Assembly: GCA_047495785.1 (NCBI GenBank)
Contig: JBLDXI010000002.1
Location: 186,001 to 250,000, forward strand
Source of the DNA: Lepidodermella squamata
Lineage: Eukaryota > Animalia > Gastrotricha
Direction: 5' to 3'
DNA length: 64,000 nucleotides
In this document: positions 14,943 through 47,839 of the stretch, piece after piece
Position numbering within the stretch: the stretch's first letter is position 1
Layout of the letters: each line of letters opens with the position of its first letter
The notes under the pieces: generated by a model
The model's database searches: none
Seen by the model: only the letters and a program-made list of their open reading frames with translations
Told to the model about the DNA's origin: nothing
Translations under genes and position numbers: made by a program

Positions 14943-15515
14943 ATGAGATCAACGAAATATATTTTTTATTGGCTAGTAATAAAATCGGCGTCACTTCTCG
15001 AGCCCATCTCAGGCCTATCATGCTGCACATGCGTCGACCAGCCTGGTGCGCTGTGTAATAACGCGACCTTTGTGACCCTCCACGCGCACTCGTGTCCCAA
15101 AAAATTCACAAAATACTGCGTGACCTTCGCAACACTACCGCCCGATATGGCTATCAATCAACTTGAAAATCAGTCGATTGCGCACTCAAATCTACGGCCT
15201 AGTGATGAGCGATTATTGGGTCACCAAAATGTCCTTCAATTTGAATATGGGTGTTCAAATAAATGCCCGTTTATTGCGGATCATTTGCGGAGTACGCATT
15301 TCGTCGACTGCTGCGATACAGATAACTGCAACTGCCCGAGGGTAGTATCATCGAAAAAGGTCGAAATTCAACCGCAATCTGAAAAATTAGAGCCGCCTCA
15401 GCCGAGCAAATCTAATACGGCGGCGAAAAATTCAATTTTAACAAGATATAAATTAGTTTGTTTAATTTTAGTTGATTTATTACTTTTTTATCTTGAAATA
15501 AAATTATTTAATTGA
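14943..15515 (+). CDS. Ly6/uPAR (three-finger, quiver-like) protein, probably GPI-anchored
   Basis: Signal peptide, LSCCTC...C...SC...YC...YGCS.KC...CCDTDNCN, Ser/Pro stalk, hydrophobic C-terminus. Confidence 0.82.
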   Translation: MRSTKYIFYWLVIKSASLLEPISGLSCCTCVDQPGALCNNATFVTLHAHSCPKKFTKYCVTFATLPPDMAINQLENQSIAHSNLRPSDERLLGHQNVLQFEYGCSNKCPFIADHLRSTHFVDCCDTDNCNCPRVVSSKKVEIQPQSEKLEPPQPSKSNTAAKNSILTRYKLVCLILVDLLLFYLEIKLFN

Positions 15516-15673
15516 CTTTTTCAAAGCGTTTATCACTGACCTCAATGTCCCGAAATTACGTCACAGATATAGCTTTATTATTCGCCATTCTTCCGGGGCT
15601 TGAAAAGGGACCAGATAAACATTCTTCAATAAATTTTGTTTGTCTTTCAATACAATCTTCAAAAATACTGTTG

Positions 15674-17540
15674 TCAACACGAAGCCGAAATGCCAGCCTC
15701 CAAGCACTGGTTCAGCGTTAGGAAACCAATCGAATAGCCAGCTTCATTGACGACGAAAATGCCAGGCAGATGGCGCTGATTCATCTTAGAAACAGCCGTT
15801 GAAACTTGACAATGCTCCGTGACTGAAATGTCCTCGACGTTCATGGTGAAACGGGTTGAATTTAGCAGCTTCAGCTCGTCCAGTAGGTCGCCTACCGATG
15901 TGTTTGTTGGCAGTTTTTCGAGCATGGCAAAACCGACTGCACTGTCGGTTAGAACTTCGAGTAAACGGCCGCAATCGTCGATGATTCCGACCATTCCGAG
16001 AGCTCCGCAAAGTAAGACAGTTAACGCCTCGCTTTAACAAAAATTGAAATTGAAATTATTTTTCAAAAAATGGAGAAAATTGAAAAATTGAAATTTTATA
16101 TAAAAATTCAAACTTTTTATAAAATTTCTGGAAAATGAGAAAATATCTTCAAATTTCTGAAAAGTTAAAGCTTCAAAAATCAAAAAATTTGTAATTAATT
16201 AAATTATGAAAATCAGAGAAAATTATAAAATTTGGAAACAGGATATTTCGATAAAATGGGACATTTTTCGCAAAAAATTTCAAGAAAAATTCTTGAAAAC
16301 ATAGTTTTAAAATAATACTCAATGCTTCTATTTTACCAGAATGGCGCCGAACGGAAAAGCATGGGAGCCATTTTTGTGTTCTCGTTTTTAAGCAGAATTT
16401 CACGAACTGATAGCGCCCGTCGGCCAATATTGCCGCCAGGGTGATTCGAGCGGAAATCCTCACCGGTGAAACGACGTCGTTTCATCATGTACATGGCTAA
16501 GGCATCACCAAGGGCCAGCATACACGTCGATGACGTAGTCGGAGCAAGACCGTGAGGACAGGCCTCGGGCATGTCAGGAATCATCAGCTGGTTAAATGAA
16601 AAAAATTGAATAGAAGCTCGGAGATTTTTTCGGAAATTTTTAGAATCAAATCCAGTTTTTATTTTAAAATTCAGGCAAAATTTAAAAATTAATTAATTAA
16701 AATTTTGAATTTAGAATCTGTGAATCCAAATTATCGAATTATCATTTGAGTATAGAATTTTTGAATTTTGTTCAATTTTTGAATTTAATTAAAAAAATCA
16801 ATTTTAATATAAATTTAAAAAAATAATTTTCGTAATTGCTAAATTTCCTAATTTTTTTCAAATTAAAATATCAATTATTTTCAGGTCAATTTTTAGGCCA
16901 GGATAATTACCGCGATATTAGCATCTTGAGCCAATTTACTGCGCGACTTTGCCGTAATAGCAATCAGCGGAATCTCCAACCGATGGCACCTAATAATAGT
17001 CTGCAGCATCTCCGGAACATCGCCCGATCGACTCAGCATAATAACCGCATCGCCTCGATTAATCGCGCCCAACTCGCCGTGGTTGAAATCACCTGGGTGC
17101 AGGAAAAACGCCGGTGACCCAGTTGACGCTAGGGTGGACGCAATTTTTCGCCCGATGTGGCCCGATTTTCCAAGCCCAGTGATAATAATTCGCCCGGGGA
17201 TCGCGAGTAGGACCGAGGCAGCTCGGCAGAATGATTCATTGACAACCCCGGCTAATTTTTCAAGCCCGCGAGCTTCTTCTAAAATCACTCGTTGCGCCTC
17301 ACCTATCGCGTCGGTGATGACGTCACCCGTCACGTCGCAGTTGACAAAATCAGCGGCTAAATTGTGGAGGGAGCTTGTCAGGGTGTGGCGCTGGTCATCT
17401 TCACTCAACAGCTTCTTCTTAGCATTGATTGGCATTGTTAGGTTGGAAACTTGGTGGGTTGAAGATTTAGCACCTAGTGGAGTATCCAAGACATGGCGCC
17501 TCGGTGGTGTAGGTGTCGAGACTGAATTTAGAGAAGCCAT
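15674..17540 (-). CDS. KdsD/KpsF/GutQ-family arabinose-5-phosphate isomerase homologue (SIS + CBS domains), 412 aa; exons 17540-16911, 16587-16337, 16031-15674
   Basis: GLGKSGHIGRKIASTLASTGSPAFFLHP, HGELG, SRSG, EACPHGLAPTTSST, HPGG and CBS-like GIIDDCGRLLEVLTD. Two AT-rich GT-AG introns (phase 0 and 2) restore one frame. Confidence 0.92.
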
Positions 17541-17712
17541 CTAGCCTTAAGTTCCACACAGGAGAAAGGAAGGAATGACAATTTGTTGTTTTTCTCTAAC
17601 AAAAATAATGAATGAGTGAATTTTTGAGTTCAGGGCCGCTTGTGCGATTTATTGAAACGCGTGCTTGCAAAATTCAAATTTGTCAATAAGAAAAAAAACA
17701 TGAGCTGAAAAA

Positions 17713-18000
17713 ATGAAAATAAATCCGGCTTACGTCGCCGCCAGAGATGCGCTTCGCGAACAAATTCGCCAACGTATTGCTGAGATCACTCACACTCACC
17801 AACCGACACGTCAAGCACCGCCGCCGAAATTCAACCAATGGTCTCGAGGTCAACCCAAGATCAAAGGAGAACTGAACATGAACGACTTGGTAGACCAGGT
17901 TTGCCCGATTGTAATTGAACAGGTCGAGAGGAATTTTAGCAAAATGTTACATGATAATAATCAACAGCTCATCGCTCTTCTCAAACAAAATAGATGGTAG
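17713..18000 (+). CDS. C-terminal remnant of LINE ORF1
   Basis: Its stop codon overlaps the ORF2 ATG (aatagATGgTAG); assigned by position only. Confidence 0.5.
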   Translation: MKINPAYVAARDALREQIRQRIAEITHTHQPTRQAPPPKFNQWSRGQPKIKGELNMNDLVDQVCPIVIEQVERNFSKMLHDNNQQLIALLKQNRW

Positions 18001-20892
18001 TAATTATTCAATGGAATTCTCGAGGCCTGAAAAGCCGAAAAGTAGAGCTTATCAAATTAGCTAAAGACCTCAATGCAGACATAATTTTAATTAATGAAAC
18101 GCATTTCAGCAGGAAAACAGTTTTTGAAATCCCAGGATATGAACTTTTTAGGAAAGACCGCGAAAACCAGGTAAGCCACGACTCTACTACCTATGGTGGC
18201 GTTGCAATCTTTGTAAAAAATAATATATCTATAACCAAAGAATTTTACGAATTTAGCACCTCCCACAGCGAGTGGTTAGCTATAACAGTTGTAAATAAAT
18301 CCGGTCATAAATTAATAATAGGCACCGGTTATACATCACCAGGTAAAAAAGAGTTGGATGTGTCATTTCTTGATCAAATTTTATCCAGCGATACCCCATG
18401 TTTATTTGCTGGAGACATGAACGCGTGGCATTCCGACCTACTCACAGGCCCGCCGCCGTCCAACACATATGGCCGAATCTTATCAGAATTTTTCAATTCC
18501 TCGAATGTCACTCTTCTCAGCGATGGGACGCCTACTCACTTTTCCCCCAGCGGCGTGGGGCGGCAGATTGATATATGGATCAGCAACGAAGCGGCACGAT
18601 CTTCAATTATAGGTACACCGACGGTAGAAGATTTCTACGGGAGCGACCACACTGCAACTTGCCTCAAAGTCAAATTCTCTGCGTGCACTTCCCCGCCGAA
18701 ATCAGATGTCGAAGCGCCCCGGATAAACTTCAAAAGCAATGAACTGGTCTCGATTCCGAAGCAGTCTTGATCAGTGTCTTGATGAACGCACAGAAGCCGT
18801 CAAGCCGAAAGTAGGCGACGAAATCAGCTCGATCAAAAATTACATCACAGAAATCTCAAGTACAGTTCAGTCTGTCACGGATGCGGTCGCGCCGAAGTGT
18901 CCTGCAAACAAGTTGCCGACCTTCAACATGAACAAGGAGATAGGAGATCTTCTGGATCAGCGAAATCAGCTACAACGTCTGCATGCTGAAACAAACGCGC
19001 CCGAAGTGAAAAGAGAGGTGAATCGCTTGAACCGCGATATCAAAAAGCTCATTGGACAGGAAGAGGCTCGCGAATGTGAACGGAATCTAAAGCTGATGGC
19101 TAAACGGTTTCGAGAAGAACAGCAGCAAAGTCAAGAGGCGTGGCGAATGTTGGCTGCTAGGTTTAATCGTCTCAAACGCAGCAAACGACTTGGTACCCTG
19201 GTTGATCAAAAGACGGGGCTTGTAGCCACTGACGACAAGGCAAAAGCACAACTGATCGCGGCAATCTTCAGCAAAGTTGTAAGTGGAGCACCAGCCTCTT
19301 CAAAACGCCCAGAGGACACTGCGTTCTGGCAGCAGGTAGAGAGTGCGGTTGCATCTAACTCGTCAATAAAACCACTGGAAAGAATCCCCGAAGTGCTACC
19401 AATAAAAATTTCCCGCTTCACAATGAGGCTGTTCATTCGTCGGCTTAAAAACAAAGCGCCTGGTAACGACAATATTCTCAACGCTGTCATAAAAAATGGC
19501 GGTCCAGGACTCCGTAGTCACCTGAAGTACGCGTTTGAATTGTGCCTTGCTACAGGCTATATACCGGCAGAATGGAAACTGGCGATCGTCGTGCCGATCC
19601 TGAAGGAGGGAAAGGATAGCAGGCTCCCGGAATCATACCGCCCGGTGTCACTGTTGCCAGCCTTCGCGAAGCTACTAGAGTCACTGGTAGCCATGATGCT
19701 ACAAAATTTCCTGGAAGCTCAGAGCCTGCTACCCGAGCATCAGTATGGATTTCGAAGACTCCGAGGCGCTGTCGACCCACTTTTTCGCCTGATTAGCGAT
19801 GCAGCCCTCGCCATGGCCCATCACAGCAAGCTCGTGGCTGTGTTCTTGGACTTCAAGGCCGCCTTCGATACGGTCTGGCACGCAGGGCTTATACAAAAAC
19901 TGATCGATTCTGGAGCCCCGGAGCCTTTGGTGCGATGGACAGCGAACTTCCTAGACGACCGATCGTTTCAGGTCCGAGTTAGAGACGAGCTCAGCGAATC
20001 AAGAAAAATCGGCTGCGGTGTGCCACAAGGTAGCCCGTTGAGTCCGCTGCTGTTCATATTTTACTGCGCGGATATGCAGCCTCCGGAGTCAAACCCTGAC
20101 GACGGGAGAAAAGCGGTCGCCGCCGGGACCTACGCAGACGACGCTGCAAACTGGGCATGGGGCCCGCATTACGAGCAGTGCGTTGTAAGGCTACAAGCCC
20201 GCCTCCGATCCACCGAAGCGTGGTGCGCGAAATGGCGTCTAGAACTTAATCCGGCGAAATGCGAAAGCATTCTAATCGGCCACACTGGCGCTTCGTCCCC
20301 GTCGGTTCTTCTCTCCATTGCTGGTCAACGAATCCCTCAAGTCAACGAAGTAAAATACCTAGGAATCACGATCACGGCGAAATTGTCGTGGGAACGCCAC
20401 CTCGACCGTCTGTCTGCGAAGACGAAACCGCGAGCTGCCTGCCTCAGAGGAATAGCTTGTAGGCGCATTGTCCCCAGCGATCTTTGCATCATGTTCAGCC
20501 GAGTCCTCATCGACAGCGTGCTCACATATGGATCTCCAGCCTGGTACTGTCTGCCAAAAACCTCCGAACTGCGCCTTTTCAACTTTCAAGCACACGGGTT
20601 AAGAGCAGCAATGGATCTGCCATTTGAGTGCGATTCCTTCGGAGTCGTCGTCGAAGCGAAGGCGGCAGCAATCAGCGACGTCTTTGAGAAGCAACTGGAG
20701 CGCTATGGCGAACGCTGTCTCACCGCGGACAATGGCATGAAAGAGTACTTGCAGTATATCGCCAGTCAGCAGCCTGATGCCTTCGGCAAGCGGATGCTCG
20801 ACCTACACTGTCCAGCCTGGCACCTACGCCGCAATGTCGCCCCCTCAATGGCGCAAAATAAGAGAATCACAGATTTCTTCAACCCTCGATAG
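17994..20892 (+). pseudogene. LINE ORF2 (AP endonuclease + reverse transcriptase) with a single +1 frameshift at ~18733
   Basis: QWNSRGL, LINETH, AGDMNA, GSDH (APE); KAPGND, YRPVSLL, QYGFR, FLDFKAAFDTV, GVPQGSPLSP, YADD, KYLG (RT). Removing one A in caaaagc gives RINFKAMNW. Confidence 0.92.
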
Positions 20893-26156: not shown

Positions 26157-27140
26157 ATGAGTCAGGCGAAGAAACGATTCAAAGCGCTGGCTTTCTCAGC
26201 TCTCCTGCTGATTGGGCATTTTCGGGTTAACGCCAATGTGATTCGTATCAGACGTCAACCGGACCTGATACAGTTCTCCCCTGTTGCGGCTGCTCCAATC
26301 GCCAAAAAAGTGCAACGACCCGCCTATTTGTTTCCTCCATCATCGATCGGGCAATACTATCCTCTACAGCCTGCTCCGAATCCTCCACAGCCTGCTCCGA
26401 ATCCTTCAAGCAAGATAGAATCTCCGGGGCCCCTAGCAAACCCTTGGAGTGATGCCCAGCCGAAGCCCGCAGCCAAGCCGCCAGTAGATAAAGCCCTGGT
26501 TAACAAAGTATTAGGACCTGCCAACATACCTGCGGCTCGTCGCCAGAGTCTTTCGGATCTTCCCGAGACGCCGACCAAAGTTAAGGAACTGCCGACGAGT
26601 TTCAGCGAGCCGTCATCGCCAACTGGCGTGGGACCACTATCCCCAGTAATTACCGACCCAGAAGCTAGAGCGGAGTATATACAAGGAAATAACCTCGGCA
26701 AACCGAGATGGAGCAAGTTAAGAATTATTGGACATATGGCATTTGCAGCATTCATTATAGCCGCTACCGCTGCTCTGATCTATAATTTTGCAGCAGGCAG
26801 CTCGACGGTGCCTGCTTTCGTCGCTAAGGAGCGAGCTCTTGATCTCCAAATTCGCACTCAGATGCTGCAACAGGTTAACAGGCAATCTGTCGAAGGCCGA
26901 TCACTAAGTGGGAAGGCAGATGATGAAGACAGCGATTTAGGGGATAGGTTACTTCTAGCTGGTGTTAGGGACGATTCGATATTCGACGCAGCCGTCGTCG
27001 CTAGAAGCTACCTAGAACAGCAAGGGTCTTCTGCTGTTTTACAAGTATTGCCAAGTCCGGACGCCGCAACTTCATCAAGAGACAAGTTTTTAAGAAAAAT
27101 TGTTGGTGAATCGGATTATGATGGTGGGAATTCCCTATGA
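26157..27140 (+). CDS. Unknown array family, type A (327 aa)
   Basis: Signal peptide, RIRR, Pro-rich region, KPRWSKLR + hydrophobic helix, VEGR, VARSYL..QG..LPSP..DYDGG. Confidence 0.85.
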   Translation: MSQAKKRFKALAFSALLLIGHFRVNANVIRIRRQPDLIQFSPVAAAPIAKKVQRPAYLFPPSSIGQYYPLQPAPNPPQPAPNPSSKIESPGPLANPWSDAQPKPAAKPPVDKALVNKVLGPANIPAARRQSLSDLPETPTKVKELPTSFSEPSSPTGVGPLSPVITDPEARAEYIQGNNLGKPRWSKLRIIGHMAFAAFIIAATAALIYNFAAGSSTVPAFVAKERALDLQIRTQMLQQVNRQSVEGRSLSGKADDEDSDLGDRLLLAGVRDDSIFDAAVVARSYLEQQGSSAVLQVLPSPDAATSSRDKFLRKIVGESDYDGGNSL

Positions 27141-35214: not shown

Positions 35215-36214
35215 ATGCTGAGAAACCGAAAACAGGTTTCATGGCTGATGCTTTCCCTAGCGATTTTGAAGTGTCAAGTATCAGGCGAATCTTGAAGCTC
35301 GAATGCCGACTCGCCGTGAAAAGACGCCATTCCAGTTAGCGCTGCTATCTGATTGGATATCTGACAACCCTCAGCTGTACAGCCAAGGTTTCGGCTATCC
35401 GTATCGACGAGTCGAAACACCAGTTGGAAGCCTAAATTCTGCACCTGGGGTTATGGAAGTCCCAACAAAGTTCTCCAAAGCCATTTATCGAAGCAAATCA
35501 GCTCCGAGTGTTGTTGACCTCGAAAAGGGAGTTCCTAGACAGCCAATCGAGCGACTACCCGAGTCTCTGATAGCGAAGCTCAGCCCTGAGAGTCAGATTG
35601 TCATGAAACCTGGGCAGAGAATACGTCACACAGGTGGGGAAGAAGCAAGGCTGACATCATCTCATACCACTTCATCAGATACCACTGTAATAGCCGACGT
35701 GAACTTTGCGGAAATGGCTGCAGTGAGGTATGAAGCTGAGCAAGTTCAATTGCTACCTGGTCACCGGGAGCGCATCGATCAAGCCATCGTGCAGACAACT
35801 TGGAAACAACGAGCTTTGGTCGGAGCTTACATCCTAAGCGGAGTAGTAGTTGCTGCCTTGGTAACGTACGGCATGTATCGCTTGAATCAGTTAATCGATG
35901 GCGGGGATGTTCCGAAACAGCACAGAATCAAAGTCCTTCAAATCCCGAAGGACAACAGTTGGATCGAGGGTCGACTGATGAAGAGTACTTCTTACAATTC
36001 GATTTACACTCGAATCTTCAGTTCAATCGATTTGACGGAAGATGATTTAATGGCGCGAGGAGCTGAACTGGCTGGGGATTATTTGAGTCAAAATATAGCC
36101 ATTACTCGCAATACATTTCCGAACCCTGAGTTTGGTACTATAATTAATGATTATTTTTTAGAAATCGCAATGATCAAAGGAATAGCTTCTTACGACCCTG
36201 CAATCGATTACTGA
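35215..36214 (+). pseudogene. Type H copy 1, with a 5-bp deletion after the signal peptide (residual ORF 35303-36214 has no signal peptide)
   Basis: ggcga-atcttg vs ggcgatgcaaatcttg in 41063; gives GGC GAA TCT TGA. Confidence 0.85.
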
Positions 36215-36315
36215 ATAAAAATAAAGCAGTTCGAATTTTAGCATTATAAAAAATCCAGCTTAAATCCTGATCGCCCGGTTTACTTGGGCAGCCGATTCGG
36301 TTTTTTAGGACCGGG

Positions 36316-36888
36316 ATGGATTTAAGCTTTGTTCGATTTTTTGCATGGACAATGTCACTGGCTCTTCTAAACCAGCAGATAGTAGTATCAGCCATCGAAA
36401 TTCCGCGCCAATTATCCCCGATTCAGGTTCCAAAATCACAATGGTTCGAACTGGACTTTCCTGAAAAAGTTGCAACAGCATTGCACACGACGGTGTGGAA
36501 GCCTTTCAAATTATTAGTAAGTTTTGCTGTTTTCGGAATCTTGGTGACGGTACTTAGCACAATGATTTGGCGAGAATTCATTGAGTCGGCCAATGATCGG
36601 AAAAAGAAACATCAAGCGTACCAAATGCAAAAGCTGGCAGATCAAGGAGGAGATGCGGGTAGATACGCACGTATAGAAGGAAGGTCGGCAGGCGATTCGA
36701 GTGAAATTCTAGGCAGAAAGCTTGGCTCGATGGTTGAACTTGATGGAAGGGCGGTCGAGGTTCTAAAAGACATCGACGCTAGTTTGAGCGGCCTTCCAAC
36801 ACCGACAAGGCAGAGAGCGGCTAAAGATGTTTTCGCTAGGCTCAGCAGGGGTATTATCGGAGAGAATGATTATAAAATAAATGACTGA
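36316..36888 (+). CDS. Unknown array family, type I copy 1 (190 aa, shortest member)
   Basis: Signal peptide, TTVWKPFKLL + helix, IEGR, LPTP..DVF..ENDY. Confidence 0.82.
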   Translation: MDLSFVRFFAWTMSLALLNQQIVVSAIEIPRQLSPIQVPKSQWFELDFPEKVATALHTTVWKPFKLLVSFAVFGILVTVLSTMIWREFIESANDRKKKHQAYQMQKLADQGGDAGRYARIEGRSAGDSSEILGRKLGSMVELDGRAVEVLKDIDASLSGLPTPTRQRAAKDVFARLSRGIIGENDYKIND

Positions 36889-39883: not shown

Positions 39884-40825
39884 ATGCTACGCAACTATGC
39901 CCTGATTGTGGCAGCCTTACTTTTATCTGAGCACTTCCACGTGTTACAAGGCTCTAGAGGCTCTAGAGGCTCTAAAGGCTCTAAAGGCTCCAAAGTGGAA
40001 AGCGAAATCGAAGTCCTACCGCCATTTCCTGGCATTAGGATCTCTCCAACTGACTATGGCAAAAGCCGTGTCTCACCTGAAGCTCGCGTGGTTCTCTATC
40101 CTCAAAATCGGATTCAACAATTAGCGGCTCTTCACGCAGAATTGAAAAGCAAACAGCGCAGAGAAAACATGGATCCTAATTGGGACCCATATCGTGATAT
40201 TCTGGAGCTAGCAGGCGATCCAGCGGAAAACACTTTGAGATCATCGTCAGAGAGCTTAAGCAATGACTCGCCAACTCATTTCTCTGATGGCTTGAACGTA
40301 CCAGTAAATGCAGGTCAAGAGCTGTCGCCAGCTCAATCAGTTGAAATCACAGTTAAAAAATCGCGGTGGGATCGAAAGTTGTTTCGAGGCCTGTTCTGGT
40401 TCGGTGTGACAGTACTTTATATCGCAGCCATTGTCGGTATCACAATTGGCATCGTAGAGCTCGTAGCTTACTTCAACCCGGGCAAGAAGAGCGAGCCTGT
40501 AAAGCCAGTTGCAAATAATTGGAAAGGCCTCGACGACAAATCTCGCCTCGACATTCTGACGGGCAACCAACGGAGCGTAGAAGGACGATTTTCACGAGAT
40601 GATAGCGAGACGGAGGAATTGACGGCTCGAATCTTAGCAGTTGACCGTGACGATGATGATTTGCTTTCACAGGGCGCTACTGTCGCTAGGAATTTTCTAT
40701 TGCAAGGTCCAGTTGTAGCTCTGAATACATTCCCAAGCCCATATATCCGGCTTATTGTTACTGATCAATATGCAATGCATAACTTCATTTCGTTTGATTA
40801 CGATGGTGAAAGCCTCCCAATGTAA
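39884..40825 (+). CDS. Unknown array family, type G (313 aa)
   Basis: Signal peptide, (GSR/K)5, VSPEAR, KKSRWDRKLFR + helix, VEGR, DYDGE. Confidence 0.88.
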   Translation: MLRNYALIVAALLLSEHFHVLQGSRGSRGSKGSKGSKVESEIEVLPPFPGIRISPTDYGKSRVSPEARVVLYPQNRIQQLAALHAELKSKQRRENMDPNWDPYRDILELAGDPAENTLRSSSESLSNDSPTHFSDGLNVPVNAGQELSPAQSVEITVKKSRWDRKLFRGLFWFGVTVLYIAAIVGITIGIVELVAYFNPGKKSEPVKPVANNWKGLDDKSRLDILTGNQRSVEGRFSRDDSETEELTARILAVDRDDDDLLSQGATVARNFLLQGPVVALNTFPSPYIRLIVTDQYAMHNFISFDYDGESLPM

Positions 40826-41062
40826 TAAACATGTCCTGAAGCTCTGAATCTATCAGGCACATTAAATAGCAAACTATCATCATCCTAAGGTTAACTTGAC
40901 GGCTCACAAGAAAGATAAGAAAAATTTAGCCATTTTCTTTCATTCTCCTGTCAAAATTTAAGACCGAAAAATCCTCCTTGACATAATTCTCTTCCCATTC
41001 ATGGAGAACTCATTGTAGCTGCTCTACGGGAGAGTCTCCCGCCTCTGGAAAACTTTGATAAA

Positions 41063-42067
41063 ATGCTTAGAAACCCAAAACAAGTTTCATGGCTGTTGCT
41101 TTCCCTAGCGATTTTGAAGTGTCAAGTATCAGGCGATGCAAATCTTGAAGCTCGAATGCCGACTCGCCGTGAAAAGACGCCATTCCAGTTAGCGCTGCTA
41201 TCTGATTGGATATCTGACAACCCTCAGCTGTACAGCCAAGGTTTCGGCTATCCGTATCGACGAGTCGAAACACCAGTTGGAAGCCTAAATTCTGCACCTG
41301 GGGTTATGGAAGTCCCAACAAAGTTCTCCAAAGCCATTTATCGAAGCAAATCAGCTCCGAGTGTTGTTGACCTCGAAAAGGGAGTTCCTAGACAGCCAAT
41401 CGAGCGACTACCCGAGTCTCTGATAGCGAAGCTCAGCCCTGAGAGTCAGATTGTCATGAAACCTGGGCAGAGAATACGTCACACAGGTGGGGAAGAAGCA
41501 AGGCTGACATCATCTCATACCACTTCATCAGATACCACTGTAATAGCCGACGTGAACTTTGCGGAAATGGCTGCAGTGAGGTATGAAGCTGAGCAAGTTC
41601 AATTGCTACCTGGTCACCGGGAGCGCATCGATCAAGCCATCGTGCAGACAACTTGGAAACAACGAGCTTTGGTCGGAGCTTACATCCTAAGCGGAGTAGT
41701 AGTTGCTGCCTTGGTAACGTACGGCATGTATCGCTTGAATCAGTTAATCGATGGCGGGGATGTTCCGAAACAGCACAGAATCAAAGTCCTTCAAATCCCG
41801 AAGGACAACAGTTGGATCGAGGGTCGACTGATGAAGAGTACTTCTTACAATTCGATTTACACTCGAATCTTCAGTTCAATCGATTTGACGGAAGATGATT
41901 TAATGGCGCGAGGAGCTGAACTGGCTGGGGATTATTTGAGTCAAAATATAGCCATTACTCGCAATACATTTCCGAACCCTGAGTTTGGTACTATAATTAA
42001 TGATTATTTTTTAGAAATCGCAATGATCAAAGGAATAGCTTCTTACGACCCTGCAATCGATTACTGA
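41063..42067 (+). CDS. Unknown array family, type H copy 2 (334 aa)
   Basis: Signal peptide, LSPESQ, TTWKQR + helix, IEGR, NTFPNP, SYD. Confidence 0.88.
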   Translation: MLRNPKQVSWLLLSLAILKCQVSGDANLEARMPTRREKTPFQLALLSDWISDNPQLYSQGFGYPYRRVETPVGSLNSAPGVMEVPTKFSKAIYRSKSAPSVVDLEKGVPRQPIERLPESLIAKLSPESQIVMKPGQRIRHTGGEEARLTSSHTTSSDTTVIADVNFAEMAAVRYEAEQVQLLPGHRERIDQAIVQTTWKQRALVGAYILSGVVVAALVTYGMYRLNQLIDGGDVPKQHRIKVLQIPKDNSWIEGRLMKSTSYNSIYTRIFSSIDLTEDDLMARGAELAGDYLSQNIAITRNTFPNPEFGTIINDYFLEIAMIKGIASYDPAIDY

Positions 42068-42167
42068 ATAAAAATAAAGCAGTTCGAATTTTAGCATTAA
42101 AAAAATCCAGCTTAAATCCTGATCGCCCGGTTTACTTGGGCAGCCGATTCGGTTTTTTAGGACCGGG

Positions 42168-42740
42168 ATGGATTTAAGCTTTGTTCGATTTTTTGCATGG
42201 ACAATGTCACTGGCTCTTCTAAACCAGCAGATAGTAGTTTCAGCCATCGATATTCCGCACAAATTGTCCCCGATCGAAGTTCCCAAATCACAATGGTTCG
42301 AACTGGACTTTCCTGAAAAAGTTGCAACAACAGTGCACACGACGGTGTGGAAGCCTTTCAAATTATTAGTAAGTTTTGCTGTTTTCGGAATCTTGGTGAC
42401 GGTACTTAGCACAATGATTTGGCGAGAATTCATTGAGTCGGCCAATGATCGGAAAAAGAAACATCAAGCGTACCAAATGCAAAAGCTGGCAGATCAAGGA
42501 GGAGATGCGGGTAGATACGCACGTATAGAAGGAAGGTCGGCAGGCGATTCGAGTGAAATTCTAGGCAGAAAGCTTGGCTCGATGGTTGAACTTGATGGAA
42601 GGGCGGTCGAGGTTTTAAAAGACTTCGATGCTAGCTTGAGTGGCCTCCCAACACCGACAAGGCAGACAGCGGCTAAAGATGTTTTCGCTAGGCTCAGCAG
42701 GGGTATTATCGGAGAGAATGATTATAAAATAAATGACTGA
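42168..42740 (+). CDS. Unknown array family, type I copy 2
   Basis: Paralogue of 36316. Confidence 0.82.
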   Translation: MDLSFVRFFAWTMSLALLNQQIVVSAIDIPHKLSPIEVPKSQWFELDFPEKVATTVHTTVWKPFKLLVSFAVFGILVTVLSTMIWREFIESANDRKKKHQAYQMQKLADQGGDAGRYARIEGRSAGDSSEILGRKLGSMVELDGRAVEVLKDFDASLSGLPTPTRQTAAKDVFARLSRGIIGENDYKIND

Positions 42741-44982: not shown

Positions 44983-45924
44983 ATGCTACGCAACTATGCC
45001 CTGATTGTGGCAGCCTTACTTTTATCTGAGCACTTCCACGTGTTACAAGGCTCTAGAGGCTCTAGAGGCTCTAAAGGCTCTAAAGGCTCCAAAGTGGAAA
45101 GCGAAATCGAAGTCCTACCGCCATTTCCTGGCATTAGGATCTCTCCAACTGACTATGGCAAAAGCCGTGTCTCACCTGAAGCTCGCGTGGTTCTCTATCC
45201 TCAAAATCGGATTCAACAATTAGCGGCTCTTCACGCAGAATTGAAAAGCAAACAGCGCAGAGAAAACATGGATCCTAATTGGGACCCATATCGTGATATT
45301 CTGGAGCTAGCAGGCGATCCAGCGGAAAACACTTTGAGATCATCGTCAGAGAGCTTAAGCAATGACTCGCCAACTCATTTCTCTGATGGCTTGAACGTAC
45401 CAGTAAATGCAGGTCAAGAGCTGTCGCCAGCTCAATCAGTTGAAATCACAGTTAAAAAATCGCGGTGGGATCGAAAGTTGTTTCGAGGCCTGTTCTGGTT
45501 CGGTGTGACAGTACTTTATATCGCAGCCATTGTCGGTATCACAATTGGCATCGTAGAGCTCGTAGCTTACTTCAACCCGGGCAAGAAGAGCGAGCCTGTA
45601 AAGCCAGTTGCAAATAATTGGAAAGGCCTCGACGACAAATCTCGCCTCGACATTCTGACGGGCAACCAACGGAGCGTAGAAGGACGATTTTCACGAGATG
45701 ATAGCGAGACGGAGGAATTGACGGCTCGAATCTTAGCAGTTGACCGTGACGATGATGATTTGCTTTCACAGGGCGCTACTGTCGCTAGGAATTTTCTATT
45801 GCAAGGTCCAGTTGTAGCTCTGAATACATTCCCAAGCCCATATATCCGGCTTATTGTTACTGATCAATATGCAATGCATAACTTCATTTCGTTTGATTAC
45901 GATGGTGAAAGCCTCCCAATGTAA
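44983..45924 (+). CDS. Unknown array family, type G (protein identical to 39884)
   Basis: Offset 5099 nt from 39884. Confidence 0.88.
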   Translation: MLRNYALIVAALLLSEHFHVLQGSRGSRGSKGSKGSKVESEIEVLPPFPGIRISPTDYGKSRVSPEARVVLYPQNRIQQLAALHAELKSKQRRENMDPNWDPYRDILELAGDPAENTLRSSSESLSNDSPTHFSDGLNVPVNAGQELSPAQSVEITVKKSRWDRKLFRGLFWFGVTVLYIAAIVGITIGIVELVAYFNPGKKSEPVKPVANNWKGLDDKSRLDILTGNQRSVEGRFSRDDSETEELTARILAVDRDDDDLLSQGATVARNFLLQGPVVALNTFPSPYIRLIVTDQYAMHNFISFDYDGESLPM

Positions 45925-46161
45925 TAAACATGTCCTGAAGCTCTGAATCTATCAGGCACATTAAATAGCAAACTATCATCATCCTAAGGTTAACTTGACG
46001 GCTCACAAGAAAGATAAGAAAAATTTAGCCATTTTCTTTCATTCTCCTGTCAAAATTTAAGACCGAAAAATCCTCCTTGACATAATTCTCTTCCCATTCA
46101 TGGAGAACTCATTGTAGCTGCTCTACGGGAGAGTCTCCCGCCTCTGGAAAACTTTGATAAA

Positions 46162-47166
46162 ATGCTTAGAAACCCAAAACAAGTTTCATGGCTGTTGCTT
46201 TCCCTAGCGATTTTGAAGTGTCAAGTATCAGGCGATGCAAATCTTGAAGCTCGAATGCCGACTCGCCGTGAAAAGACGCCATTCCAGTTAGCGCTGCTAT
46301 CTGATTGGATATCTGACAACCCTCAGCTGTACAGCCAAGGTTTCGGCTATCCGTATCGACGAGTCGAAACACCAGTTGGAAGCCTAAATTCTGCACCTGG
46401 GGTTATGGAAGTCCCAACAAAGTTCTCCAAAGCCATTTATCGAAGCAAATCAGCTCCGAGTGTTGTTGACCTCGAAAAGGGAGTTCCTAGACAGCCAATC
46501 GAGCGACTACCCGAGTCTCTGATAGCGAAGCTCAGCCCTGAGAGTCAGATTGTCATGAAACCTGGGCAGAGAATACGTCACACAGGTGGGGAAGAAGCAA
46601 GGCTGACATCATCTCATACCACTTCATCAGATACCACTGTAATAGCCGACGTGAACTTTGCGGAAATGGCTGCAGTGAGGTATGAAGCTGAGCAAGTTCA
46701 ATTGCTACCTGGTCACCGGGAGCGCATCGATCAAGCCATCGTGCAGACAACTTGGAAACAACGAGCTTTGGTCGGAGCTTACATCCTAAGCGGAGTAGTA
46801 GTTGCTGCCTTGGTAACGTACGGCATGTATCGCTTGAATCAGTTAATCGATGGCGGGGATGTTCCGAAACAGCACAGAATCAAAGTCCTTCAAACCCCGA
46901 AGGACAACAGTTGGATCGAGGGTCGACTGATGAAGAGTACTTCTTACAATTCGATTTACACTCGAATCTTCAGTTCAATCGATTTGACGGAAGATGATTT
47001 AATGGCGCGAGGAGCTGAACTGGCTGGGGATTATTTGAGTCAAAATATAGCCATTACTCGCAATACATTTCCGAACCCTGAGTTTGGTACTATAATTAAT
47101 GATTATTTTTTAGAAATCGCAATGATCAAAGGAATAGCTTCTTACGACCCTGCAATCGATTACTGA
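46162..47166 (+). CDS. Unknown array family, type H copy 3
   Basis: One amino-acid difference (I/T) from 41063. Confidence 0.88.
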   Translation: MLRNPKQVSWLLLSLAILKCQVSGDANLEARMPTRREKTPFQLALLSDWISDNPQLYSQGFGYPYRRVETPVGSLNSAPGVMEVPTKFSKAIYRSKSAPSVVDLEKGVPRQPIERLPESLIAKLSPESQIVMKPGQRIRHTGGEEARLTSSHTTSSDTTVIADVNFAEMAAVRYEAEQVQLLPGHRERIDQAIVQTTWKQRALVGAYILSGVVVAALVTYGMYRLNQLIDGGDVPKQHRIKVLQTPKDNSWIEGRLMKSTSYNSIYTRIFSSIDLTEDDLMARGAELAGDYLSQNIAITRNTFPNPEFGTIINDYFLEIAMIKGIASYDPAIDY

Positions 47167-47266
47167 ATAAAAATAAAGCAGTTCGAATTTTAGCATTAAA
47201 AAAATCCAGCTTAAATCCTGATCGCCCGGTTTACTTGGGCAGCCGATTCGGTTTTTTAGGACCGGG

Positions 47267-47839
47267 ATGGATTTAAGCTTTGTTCGATTTTTTGCATGGA
47301 CAATGTCACTGGCTCTTCTAAACCAGCAGATAGTAGTTTCAGCCATCGATATTCCGCACAAATTGTCCCCGATCGAAGTTCCCAAATCACAATGGTTCGA
47401 ACTGGACTTTCCTGAAAAAGTTGCAACAGCAGTGCACACGACGGTGTGGAAGCCTTTCAAATTATTAGTAAGTTTTGCTGTTTTCGGAATCTTGGTGACG
47501 GTACTTAGCACAATGATTTGGCGAGAATTCATTGAGTCGGCCAATGATCGGAAAAAGAAACATCAAGCGTACCAAATGCAAAAGCTGGCAGATCAAGGAG
47601 GAGATGCGGGTAGATACGCACGTATAGAAGGAAGGTCGGCAGGCGATTCGAGTGAAATTCTAGGCAGAAAGCTTGGCTCGATGGTTGAACTTGATGGAAG
47701 GGCGGTCGAGGTTTTAAAAGACTTCGATGCTAGCTTGAGTGGCCTCCCAACACCGACAAGGCAGACAGCGGCTAAAGATGTTTTCGCTAGGCTTAGCAGG
47801 GGTATTATCGGAGAGAATGATTACAAAATAAATGACTGA
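47267..47839 (+). CDS. Unknown array family, type I copy 3
   Basis: One amino-acid difference (T/A) from 42168. Confidence 0.82.
   Translation: MDLSFVRFFAWTMSLALLNQQIVVSAIDIPHKLSPIEVPKSQWFELDFPEKVATAVHTTVWKPFKLLVSFAVFGILVTVLSTMIWREFIESANDRKKKHQAYQMQKLADQGGDAGRYARIEGRSAGDSSEILGRKLGSMVELDGRAVEVLKDFDASLSGLPTPTRQTAAKDVFARLSRGIIGENDYKIND

Follow-up and report, generated by a model that had tools for sequence, protein, structure and literature searches.

How does an animal come to possess a gene for an arabinose-5-phosphate isomerase, and what might it do with the product? The reaction catalyzed by this enzyme is the entry step to Kdo, a constituent of the envelopes of Gram-negative bacteria and of the cell walls of plants, and to our knowledge the enzyme is normally absent from animals. 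In the window, by which we mean the whole 64-kb stretch of DNA that was analyzed, we found a three-exon gene on the minus strand (17540-15674; Table 1) whose 412-residue product is an isomerase of the KpsF/GutQ (KdsD) type. From the N-terminus, this product comprises a disordered extension of about 70 amino acids, a SIS domain, and a C-terminal pair of CBS motifs. The exon/intron model was derived from the sequence, and its borders were then verified by spliced contigs; the start ATG of exon 1 is immediately preceded by an in-frame TAG. We assign a probability of about 0.7 to the reading that this is a working nuclear gene of an invertebrate animal and that its ancestor was a bacterial sugar-phosphate isomerase of the KpsF/GutQ (KdsD) type.

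Table 1. Features of the isomerase gene in the window, with the counterparts of its first intron in two orthologue contigs.
Feature	Sequence	Coordinates	Strand	Remarks
Transcript, approximate extent	window	15481-17590	-	5' UTR of ~50 nt, 3' UTR of ~190 nt; from X1/X3 contig coverage
Exon 1	window	16911-17540	-	start codon, N-terminal extension and first two-thirds of SIS; 210 codons, ends in phase 0
N-terminal extension	window	17316-17540	-	~70-75 residues; missing in bacterial homologues; from alignments and AlphaFold
Intron 1	window	16588-16910	-	323 nt, GT..AG, 19% GC; spliced joint
Exon 2	window	16337-16587	-	251 nt; end of SIS (E152 in PEACP, H193 in HPGG) and start of first CBS motif
Intron 2	window	16032-16336	-	305 nt, GT..AG, 19% GC; interrupts a codon after its second base
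Exon 3	window	15674-16031	-	remainder of CBS pair; stop codon TGA at 15676-15674
Intron 1	L001	6721-6781		61 nt; same phase-0 position
Intron 1	L003	4394-4469		76 nt; same phase-0 position

All searches, alignments, trees, fold models and counts were made per exon or on the natural uninterrupted open reading frames of the orthologues. Pfam places a SIS domain in exon 1 (PF01380, E 9e-18) and a CBS domain in exon 3 (PF00571, E 1.5e-5, 25.7 bits). The NCBIfam models KdsD, GutQ and kpsF run collinearly from exon 1 into exon 2; the KdsD profile (NF008141) is covered from position 16 to 143 on exon 1 (118 bits) and from 151 to 212 on exon 2 (64 bits), and the kpsF profile from 103 to 165 on exon 2 (E 8e-19). 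Scored piecewise, TIGR00393 gives 101.5 bits on exon 1 and 68.2 bits on exon 2 and leaves exon 3 unscored, its curated cut-off of 203.7 bits being one for the whole protein. The exons also align to the PDB entries 2xhz, 5uqi and 3etn (in the solved chain 2xhz, residue 59 is Ala instead of the Lys encoded in the E. coli genome). Exon 3 aligns collinearly with bacterial KdsD as far as the C-terminus, apart from 13 residues that are inserted between the two CBS motifs. As in other members of the KpsF/GutQ family, the SIS domain has a GKSG(H) phosphate-binding loop and follows the family model collinearly, and the C-terminus is formed by a pair of CBS domains, though the motifs of the latter are degenerate.

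The residues of the active site are well preserved. In E. coli numbering, the window exons retain K59 (in GKSG), H82 (in HPG), H88 (in HGE), E111, E152 and H193 (in HPGG). Five of them (K59, H88, E111, E152 and H193), which we take to be active-site residues of E. coli KdsD, are retained in the orthologues too, and each is invariant or nearly so among 457 bacterial homologues; E111 and E152 are presumably the active-site glutamates that have been mutated in the E. coli enzyme. An earlier note, made from the letters of this DNA, had pointed to the retention of the Lys of GKSG and the His residues of HGE and HPGG, and our residue table bears this out. It had also called attention to two usual glutamates that have become aspartates (in PGDF and SGDV). 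These exchanges are real, but the sites are E85 and E108, not E111 and E152. At position 85 the bacterial homologues have Glu in 434 cases and Asp in 23, and at position 108 the counts are 395 and 17 (n = 457 for both). A further exchange, D90E in the HGDLG motif, escaped that note; all 457 bacterial sequences have Asp there. Asp90, Glu85 and Glu108, further positions regarded as invariant in the KpsF/GutQ family, are not matched by the window gene. All three exchanges are conserved throughout the animal clade, except that D90 is retained in the lineage of P0003, in which the otherwise invariant H82 is replaced. The three exchanges lie near the active site. Because Asp is the minority state at positions 85 and 108 in bacteria and D90E is unseen in the 457 sequences, the specificity of the enzyme may, to judge by these residues, have shifted relative to its bacterial counterparts.

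The two ends of the protein also differ from the bacterial enzymes. Position 16 of the KdsD profile corresponds to residue 82 of the product, and some 66-70 amino acids have thus been added at the N-terminus. This extension is rich in Ser, Thr and Pro and is predicted to be disordered; in the AlphaFold model of exon 1, residues 1-41 have pLDDT values below 50 and residues 41-70 values of 56-68, whereas the SIS core is modeled with pLDDT above 90. Its first residues (MAS.N...TP.PPR) are common to the window gene and the L001 orthologue. At the other end, the C-terminal reading frame of the orthologue yields a model of a CBS pair (pLDDT above 90) that resembles the CBS pairs of the putative arabinose-5-phosphate isomerases 4o9k and 3k2v (TM 0.74-0.78). 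The degeneracy of the CBS motifs shows in the Pfam CBS score, with 18 bits in L001 and none in L003 beside the value given above for the window. With the CBS fold retained and its customary sequence motifs lost, the regulation of the enzyme has probably changed relative to the bacterial enzymes.

Between the window gene and its orthologues, silent sites are saturated (pS 0.79-0.82), and pN is 0.28-0.32. For L001 against L003, dN/dS is 0.15-0.35. In run X1 (organism A), third codon positions hold 29 of the 32 listed exon differences (p 2e-11). The gene is therefore under purifying selection. Further, lineages with saturated silent sites still have 76-79% identity in the SIS core, which points to a constrained active site.

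These results bear on the idea that the fold was kept while the arabinose-5-phosphate isomerase function was lost, such that the protein would now act on another sugar phosphate or have a sugar-phosphate-binding or regulatory role. The exchange at Asp90, the minority states at positions 85 and 108, the replacement of H82 in P0003, the newly added tail, and the CBS pair, now devoid of its usual motifs and interrupted by an insert, would all fit such a history, as would the very long stem branch of the clade (see below). The surroundings are compatible with it as well: when E. coli KdsA, KdsB and KdsC served as tblastn queries (E up to 1), no relatives of these Kdo partner proteins came up in the 64-kb window or in the orthologue contigs. 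Against this idea, the residues that we take to be catalytic in E. coli KdsD are all present in the window, L001 and L003, the substitutions are conservative ones of acid for acid, and the SIS core has resisted change over a time that saturated its silent sites. We consider a loss of the function unlikely and favor a working isomerase.

If the gene is a working one, where did it come from? Only three clusters among 1.84 billion protein representatives are close to it (203-235 bits; the next match has 136 bits), and all three lie on unlabeled metagenome contigs with animal-type neighbors; intron 1 is present in two of the three. Beyond them, all matches are of bacterial type at about 50% identity, and every named match is bacterial (44-56% identity). 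Named eukaryotes are absent from the best 120 matches of each of two word searches, and the same is true of plant-named proteins. When the longer orthologue P0001 was the query, so that proteins of up to 521 amino acids were covered, the word search returned no annotated full-length eukaryotic protein. In the JGI metagenomes, clade-specific motifs gave bacterial-type relatives only and no further members of the clade. An origin in giant viruses was considered and rejected, as a search of IMG/VR with clade patterns gave no relative. Full-text literature searches gave no report of a KpsF/GutQ-type enzyme in an animal. From these searches, the nearest relatives outside the lineage appear to be bacterial, and the gene appears to be absent from other animals. 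The broad occurrence of orthologues across animals that, according to the earlier note, would speak against a transfer is not what we observe; the close relatives are confined to the three metagenome clusters.

The trees, for which no root was inferred and from which plant and green-algal homologues were left out, unite the animal sequences with full support (100/100). The clade lies among sequences of alphaproteobacterial type, outside a clade of gammaproteobacterial, betaproteobacterial and other-phyla sequences, on a stem of 1.0 to 2.0 changes per site. Among 80 named bacterial genomes, identities are 44-53% across Alpha- and Gammaproteobacteria, with none standing out, and under fuller sampling the best trees give the animal clade without a supported sister. 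The homologue P0283 had appeared as a weakly supported sister in the first tree (94/61), but it was discarded in this role when the addition of its own relatives drew it into a separate clade. The AU test retained a sister relationship of the animal clade to the gamma/other clade (p 0.36). It also retained a union with a clade of marine eukaryotes, both for the N-terminal part (p 0.18) and for the C-terminal part (p 0.19).

This last result is in keeping with eukaryotic descent, by which the gene would be either an old, possibly mitochondrion-derived one that was lost in nearly all animals, or one received via a protist or alga with an isomerase of bacterial derivation. The marine clade is a separate group of N-terminally extended, single-exon homologues (P0283, P0389-P0393 and P0396); one member is a transcript in a collection of marine protist transcriptomes, and another shares a sparse contig of eukaryotic appearance with a fragmented nitric-oxide synthase. 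The affinity of the animal clade to alphaproteobacterial-type sequences is compatible with a mitochondrial origin, too. However, the best trees part the two clades with supports of 99/96 and 100/99, and joining them costs 10 and 16 log-likelihood units. No other animal or named eukaryote turned up near the clade among the 5.8 billion and the 1.84 billion sequences searched, and the vertical route needs loss in almost all sampled animals. Eukaryotic descent strikes us as improbable. An old horizontal acquisition is well supported, and bacteria, long ago, are the most likely source of the gene. The proposal of a domesticated horizontal transfer, put forward in the earlier note, agrees with the distribution and selection described above and with the host setting, spliced introns and base composition described below; as regards the donor, the AU tests leave alternatives.

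The transcripts and the gene's neighbors point to an animal host. We treat the public runs X1 (organism A) and X3 (organism B) as RNA-like on account of their exon-only coverage, the run type itself having been guessed by the tool. Both have contigs over 15481-16031, 16337-16587 and 16911 to about 17590, with zero depth on both introns. The joint 16031>16337 is present in X1 and X3, and the joint 16587>16911 is present in X1, with matching loose ends in X3; all joints fall exactly on the predicted GT..AG borders. In the DNA run X2, by contrast, both introns have coverage, and intron 2 is also seen there as a second allele. The two AT-rich, host-style introns that had been read from the DNA are therefore genuine, and the worry that the gene might not be expressed is answered by the spliced contigs of both runs. 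A non-LTR retrotransposon (endonuclease and reverse transcriptase) lies 450 bp upstream of the gene and an open reading frame for a Ly6/uPAR-like protein lies downstream; the window also has a Kunitz reading frame, and Rfam and tRNA scans of its 64 kb gave no matches. The region sits within one DNA contig record of more than 130 kb, and the GC content of the exons (0.50-0.53) is inside the range of the adjacent host reading frames. The orthologue contigs bear ankyrin, protein-kinase, EGF-like and Cys-loop receptor genes. The gene is integrated in host DNA, has spliceosomal introns, and is transcribed and spliced. Contaminating bacterial DNA, DNA of a symbiont or a dead insertion, to which similarity to bacterial proteins taken alone might point, can be dismissed, because the neighbors on both sides are animal-type genes and a retrotransposon, the introns are precisely removed in transcripts, a single contig record carries the region, the frame is intact and under purifying selection, and the composition is that of the host.

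We propose the following history for the acquired gene. An ancestor of this animal lineage would have acquired it, the most likely source being an alphaproteobacterial-type member of the proteobacteria (Pseudomonadota). Intron 1, whose phase-0 position is common to the window, L001 and L003, would have been gained next. The disordered N-terminal tail of about 70 residues would have been added after uptake, and the base composition would have shifted to host values. Intron 2 is private to the window lineage, the L001 and L003 orthologues being uninterrupted at that point, and it would have been acquired later, in the window lineage alone. The product is most likely cytosolic. Its predicted activity is the interconversion of D-ribulose 5-phosphate, an intermediate of the pentose-phosphate pathway, and D-arabinose 5-phosphate, which would be carried out by the SIS active site with its retained Lys59, His88, Glu111, Glu152 and His193.

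The silent sites have become saturated while a dedicated copy was kept, and this long retention suggests that these animals have a use for arabinose 5-phosphate or a close analogue. The Kdo-like glycan synthesis or pentose salvage proposed in the earlier note may be such a use, and our results lean neither toward nor away from it. A bolder and rather doubtful extension is that the acquired isomerase diverts ribulose 5-phosphate into a product not known from animals, such as a Kdo-like eight-carbon ulosonic acid or a glycan or metabolite containing D-arabinose. A Kdo-like acid could arise through additional acquired genes or through a sialic-acid-type synthase native to the animal. If this were true, the E85D, D90E and E108D exchanges, the remodeled CBS pair and the new tail would reflect a new specificity or an animal-type regulation. 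The gene thus raises the question of whether Kdo-like sugars or D-arabinose compounds are made by some animals. It also adds a clean, intron-dated example to the bacterial metabolic genes that animals have domesticated.

Among known systems, the bacterial KdsD, GutQ and KpsF enzymes (TIGR00393, NF008141, NF008581; PDB 2xhz, 3etn, 5uqi) are the closest in build. Like them, the window protein has one SIS domain with a CBS pair behind it, and from about residue 76 onward the sequences align collinearly up to the C-terminus; the SIS parts are 44-53% identical, and the GKSGH, HPG, HG.LG, SG..PE, EACP and HPGG motifs are shared. Unlike them, it is encoded by a nuclear gene with two spliceosomal introns, bears the disordered tail and the three acidic exchanges, and has a CBS pair that carries the 13-residue insert and is devoid of the TDGDLRR-type and H.HD-type motifs. 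In E. coli, the kdsC and lpt genes adjoin; none is beside the window gene.

Eukaryotic systems offer other comparisons. Plants and green algae use arabinose-5-phosphate isomerase in the Kdo pathway for rhamnogalacturonan II, and in plants the Kdo pathway is complete and a polymer that contains Kdo is known; theirs is likewise a eukaryotic nuclear gene of the same family. The marine microbial-eukaryote clade (P0283, P0389-P0393, P0396 and P0507) resembles the animal one in its SIS and CBS domains, added N-terminal tail, eukaryote-like setting and alphaproteobacterial kin. It differs in having a single exon, well-kept CBS motifs (Pfam CBS 57 bits) and E108, and in the best trees it adjoins a group with an alphaproteobacterial genome bin, apart from the animal clade. 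Finally, the SIS domains of eukaryotic glutamine:fructose-6-phosphate aminotransferases have been proposed as the eukaryotic source of D-arabinose 5-phosphate in a 2024 study, in which an E. coli kdsD gutQ mutant was rescued by the enzymes of yeast, human and trypanosomatids; the same study states that the bacterial enzyme has no obvious eukaryotic homologues (PMC11301363). These domains share the SIS fold with the window protein, and the interconversion of ribulose 5-phosphate and arabinose 5-phosphate of which they are capable is the one predicted here. However, they belong to another family with another architecture and would act by moonlighting (PMC11301363), whereas the window gene encodes a dedicated protein of the KpsF/GutQ type.

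The putative L. squamata arabinose-5-phosphate isomerase gene is a new member of the KpsF/GutQ family. Pfam places a SIS domain on exon 1 (E 9e-18) and a CBS domain on exon 3 (E 1.5e-5), and the NCBIfam KdsD, GutQ and KpsF/GutQ-family models match exon 1, then exon 2, collinearly (KdsD profile positions 16-143 and 151-212, respectively). The top solved-structure matches are the arabinose-5-phosphate isomerases 2xhz (E. coli) and 3etn (Bacteroides). In a model of exon 1, the SIS core is confident from residue 72, with pLDDT below 50 for residues 1-41 and of 56-68 for residues 41-70. The uninterrupted post-SIS ORF of the ortholog on metagenome contig L001 was modeled with pLDDT above 90 and matches CBS pairs, including those of the putative arabinose-5-phosphate isomerases 4o9k and 3k2v (TM 0.74-0.78). 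The protein thus consists of a new tail of ~70 residues followed by the SIS domain and a CBS pair; an earlier note made from the sequence alone had already described a SIS+CBS architecture with such an extension. All searches, alignments, trees, folds and counts on the isomerase were performed exon by exon or on the orthologs' natural uninterrupted ORFs.

The isomerase is a host gene that is transcribed and spliced. Its splice sites are legible in the window itself, an in-frame TAG lies immediately 5' of the ATG, the product has 412 amino acids, and the exons (50-53% GC) fall inside the range of nearby host ORFs. Three public runs contain the stretch. In X1 (coded organism A) and X3 (coded organism B), the contigs comprise exons only, with zero depth across both introns and joints at 16587>16911 and 16031>16337; the skipped parts are GT..AG on the gene strand. 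Loose ends in X3 at 16588 and 16911 bear the partner exon's sequence. The RNA nature of X1 is a tool's guess, and we took the run as RNA because of its exon-only pattern and exact joints. In X2, exons and introns are equally covered, as expected of a DNA run, and one record exceeds 130 kb. The exon-only contigs of X1 and X3 bear out the two host-style introns described in the earlier note and show that the gene is expressed. X2 also reveals another allele of intron 2, with 239 different letters in place of 263 nt; this large difference is limited to the intron.

Features of the window and of two related contigs
Feature	Position	Strand	Remarks
Triple-Kunitz ORF, 280 aa	6704-7546	+	three Kunitz domains
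Methyltransferase ORF, 334 aa	12339-13343	+	uninterrupted; SAM-dependent carboxyl methyltransferase family, Methyltransf_7, E 5e-37
Cys-rich ORF, 190 aa	14943-15515	+	weak snake-toxin/Ly6-uPAR-type match
Isomerase open stretches	17540-16893, 16584-16333, 15994-15674	-	ORFs joining into one gene
Isomerase exon 1	17540-16911	-	210 codons
Isomerase intron 1	16910-16588	-	323 nt, GT..AG, 19% GC
Isomerase exon 2	16587-16337	-	251 nt
Isomerase intron 2	16336-16032	-	305 nt, GT..AG, 19% GC, splits a codon
Isomerase exon 3	16031-15674	-	TGA at end
Non-LTR retrotransposon	17668-20892	+	head-to-head with isomerase gene
Retrotransposon short ORF	17713-18000	+	
Retrotransposon endonuclease ORF	17994-18770	+	
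Retrotransposon reverse-transcriptase ORF	18739-20892	+	
Glycoside hydrolase ORF, 252 aa	22053-22811	+	family 16 domain, E 1.5e-23; matches beta-glucan-synthesis proteins SKN1/KRE6
ORF array	26157-47839	+	dense, one strand; intronless ORFs, 190-409 aa
Second-clade isomerase gene	L119 3062-4216		single exon, N-terminal tail; sparse, eukaryote-like marine contig
Second-clade isomerase gene	L087 1189-2442		single exon, N-terminal tail; sparse, eukaryote-like marine contig

The neighbors of the isomerase are animal-type. The Cys-rich ORF lies immediately downstream and convergent, with the triple-Kunitz ORF farther along. The retrotransposon, whose ORFs overlap in a frameshift-like manner, begins ~100-150 bp upstream of the isomerase transcript; DNA-run depth rises from ~60 to 260-700 from its start onward, and it is therefore a multi-copy element. 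The methyltransferase family is known mainly from plants; its ORF would be unusual for an animal and is possibly a further transfer candidate. The ORFs of the array fall into several related families, and none of the seven tested (those at 26157, 29354, 30654, 33042, 35303, 37770 and 43622) had a Pfam match. Within the array, ~5.1 kb is duplicated in tandem and nearly identical (39884-42740 and 44983-47839, with ORFs 99-100% identical), and a third copy, at 35303-36888, is partial.

Close relatives of the isomerase are few. When 1.84 billion cluster representatives were searched, just three close clusters emerged (P0001-P0003; 203-235 bits), all from ENA metagenome assemblies; the next-best match scored 136 bits, followed by 7,170 matches of bacterial-type similarity. 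The contigs of P0001 and P0002 (L001-L005) are animal-like, with short introns and with ankyrin, protein-kinase, EGF-like and Cys-loop receptor genes. Two word searches, one sized for full-length eukaryotic proteins, yielded only bacterial names beyond the three clusters among the matches listed, and clade-specific motifs retrieved no further member from 241 million JGI metagenome records or IMG/VR. A 2024 study describes eukaryotes as without obvious homologs of the bacterial isomerase (PMC11301363), and the literature that we searched contained no report of a KpsF/GutQ-type enzyme in an animal.

The SIS part is 44-53% identical to named bacterial genomes across Alpha- and Gammaproteobacteria. 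Separate trees, without plant sequences, were built from 135 columns covering the exon 1 part and from 184 columns covering what follows intron 1. In both, the window gene and its metagenome orthologs form a clade (100/100) on a long stem (1.0-2.0 changes per site), amid alphaproteobacterial-type sequences and outside a well-supported gamma/beta/other-phyla clade. A second clade of tail-bearing homologs, including a protist-transcriptome sequence, is placed next to a group containing an alphaproteobacterial genome bin, and probably reflects a separate uptake of the gene by a marine protist or alga. One of its genes, on a sparse contig, adjoins a fragmented nitric-oxide synthase gene. Two alternatives were not rejected by AU tests: a grouping of this clade and the animal one (p 0.18 and 0.19), and a position of the animal clade next to the gamma clade (p 0.36). 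The gene can safely be called bacterial-type and is probably proteobacterial, with several donor placements compatible with the AU tests.

In the orthologs on L001 and L003, an intron (61 and 76 nt, respectively) sits exactly where intron 1 does and in the same phase, and there is none at the intron 2 position. Between the window and these orthologs, silent sites are saturated (pS 0.79-0.82) and pN is 0.28-0.32; between L001 and L003, dN/dS is 0.15-0.35. Of 32 listed exon differences between X1 and the window, 29 fall at third codon positions (p 2e-11). The shared intron, saturation and constraint indicate that the gene has long resided in the animal group. An old horizontal acquisition followed by domestication is well supported by the spliced host gene, its bacterial-type relatives and the purifying pattern, in line with the domesticated transfer that the earlier note had proposed; on this reading, the isomerase is a new member of the known set of bacterial genes domesticated by animals.

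Aligned with 457 bacterial homologs and E. coli KdsD from the K-12 genome (whose numbering is used), the protein retains K59, H82, H88, E111, E152 and H193, including the catalytic-type Lys and His residues previously noted. Five of these, K59, H88, E111, E152 and H193, are the residues to which the KdsD literature assigns a catalytic role. In the solved 2xhz chain, Ala replaces the genome-encoded Lys at position 59, a detail that supports this assignment. The two Glu-to-Asp changes already reported are real: they are E85D and E108D, distinct from the retained E111 and E152, and Asp occurs there in 23 and 17 of the 457 homologs, respectively. An additional change, D90E in the HGDLG motif, affects a position that is Asp in all 457. 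The three changes are common to the orthologs, except that P0003 keeps Asp90; it also has Asn for the HPG-motif His82, invariant in the bacterial sequences; P0003 may be a diverging paralog.

A working isomerase is suggested by the retained active site, by a SIS core 76-79% identical across lineages with saturated silent sites, and by steady transcription. Its most likely reaction would be the cytosolic interconversion of ribulose 5-phosphate and arabinose 5-phosphate; by eye, the N-terminal tail has no signal-peptide-like or membrane-like stretch. Neither the 64-kb window nor the ortholog contigs contained relatives of KdsA, KdsB or KdsC. Kdo-like glycan synthesis and pentose salvage, which the earlier note had suggested, would be candidate uses. 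Kdo-like or D-arabinose chemistry in the animal, if true, would sharply raise the significance of this gene. The changes beside the active site and the remodeled CBS pair leave room for shifted specificity or regulation. The post-SIS region aligns with bacterial KdsD up to the final residues; it has lost the usual motifs, and an insert of 13 residues separates its two CBS motifs.
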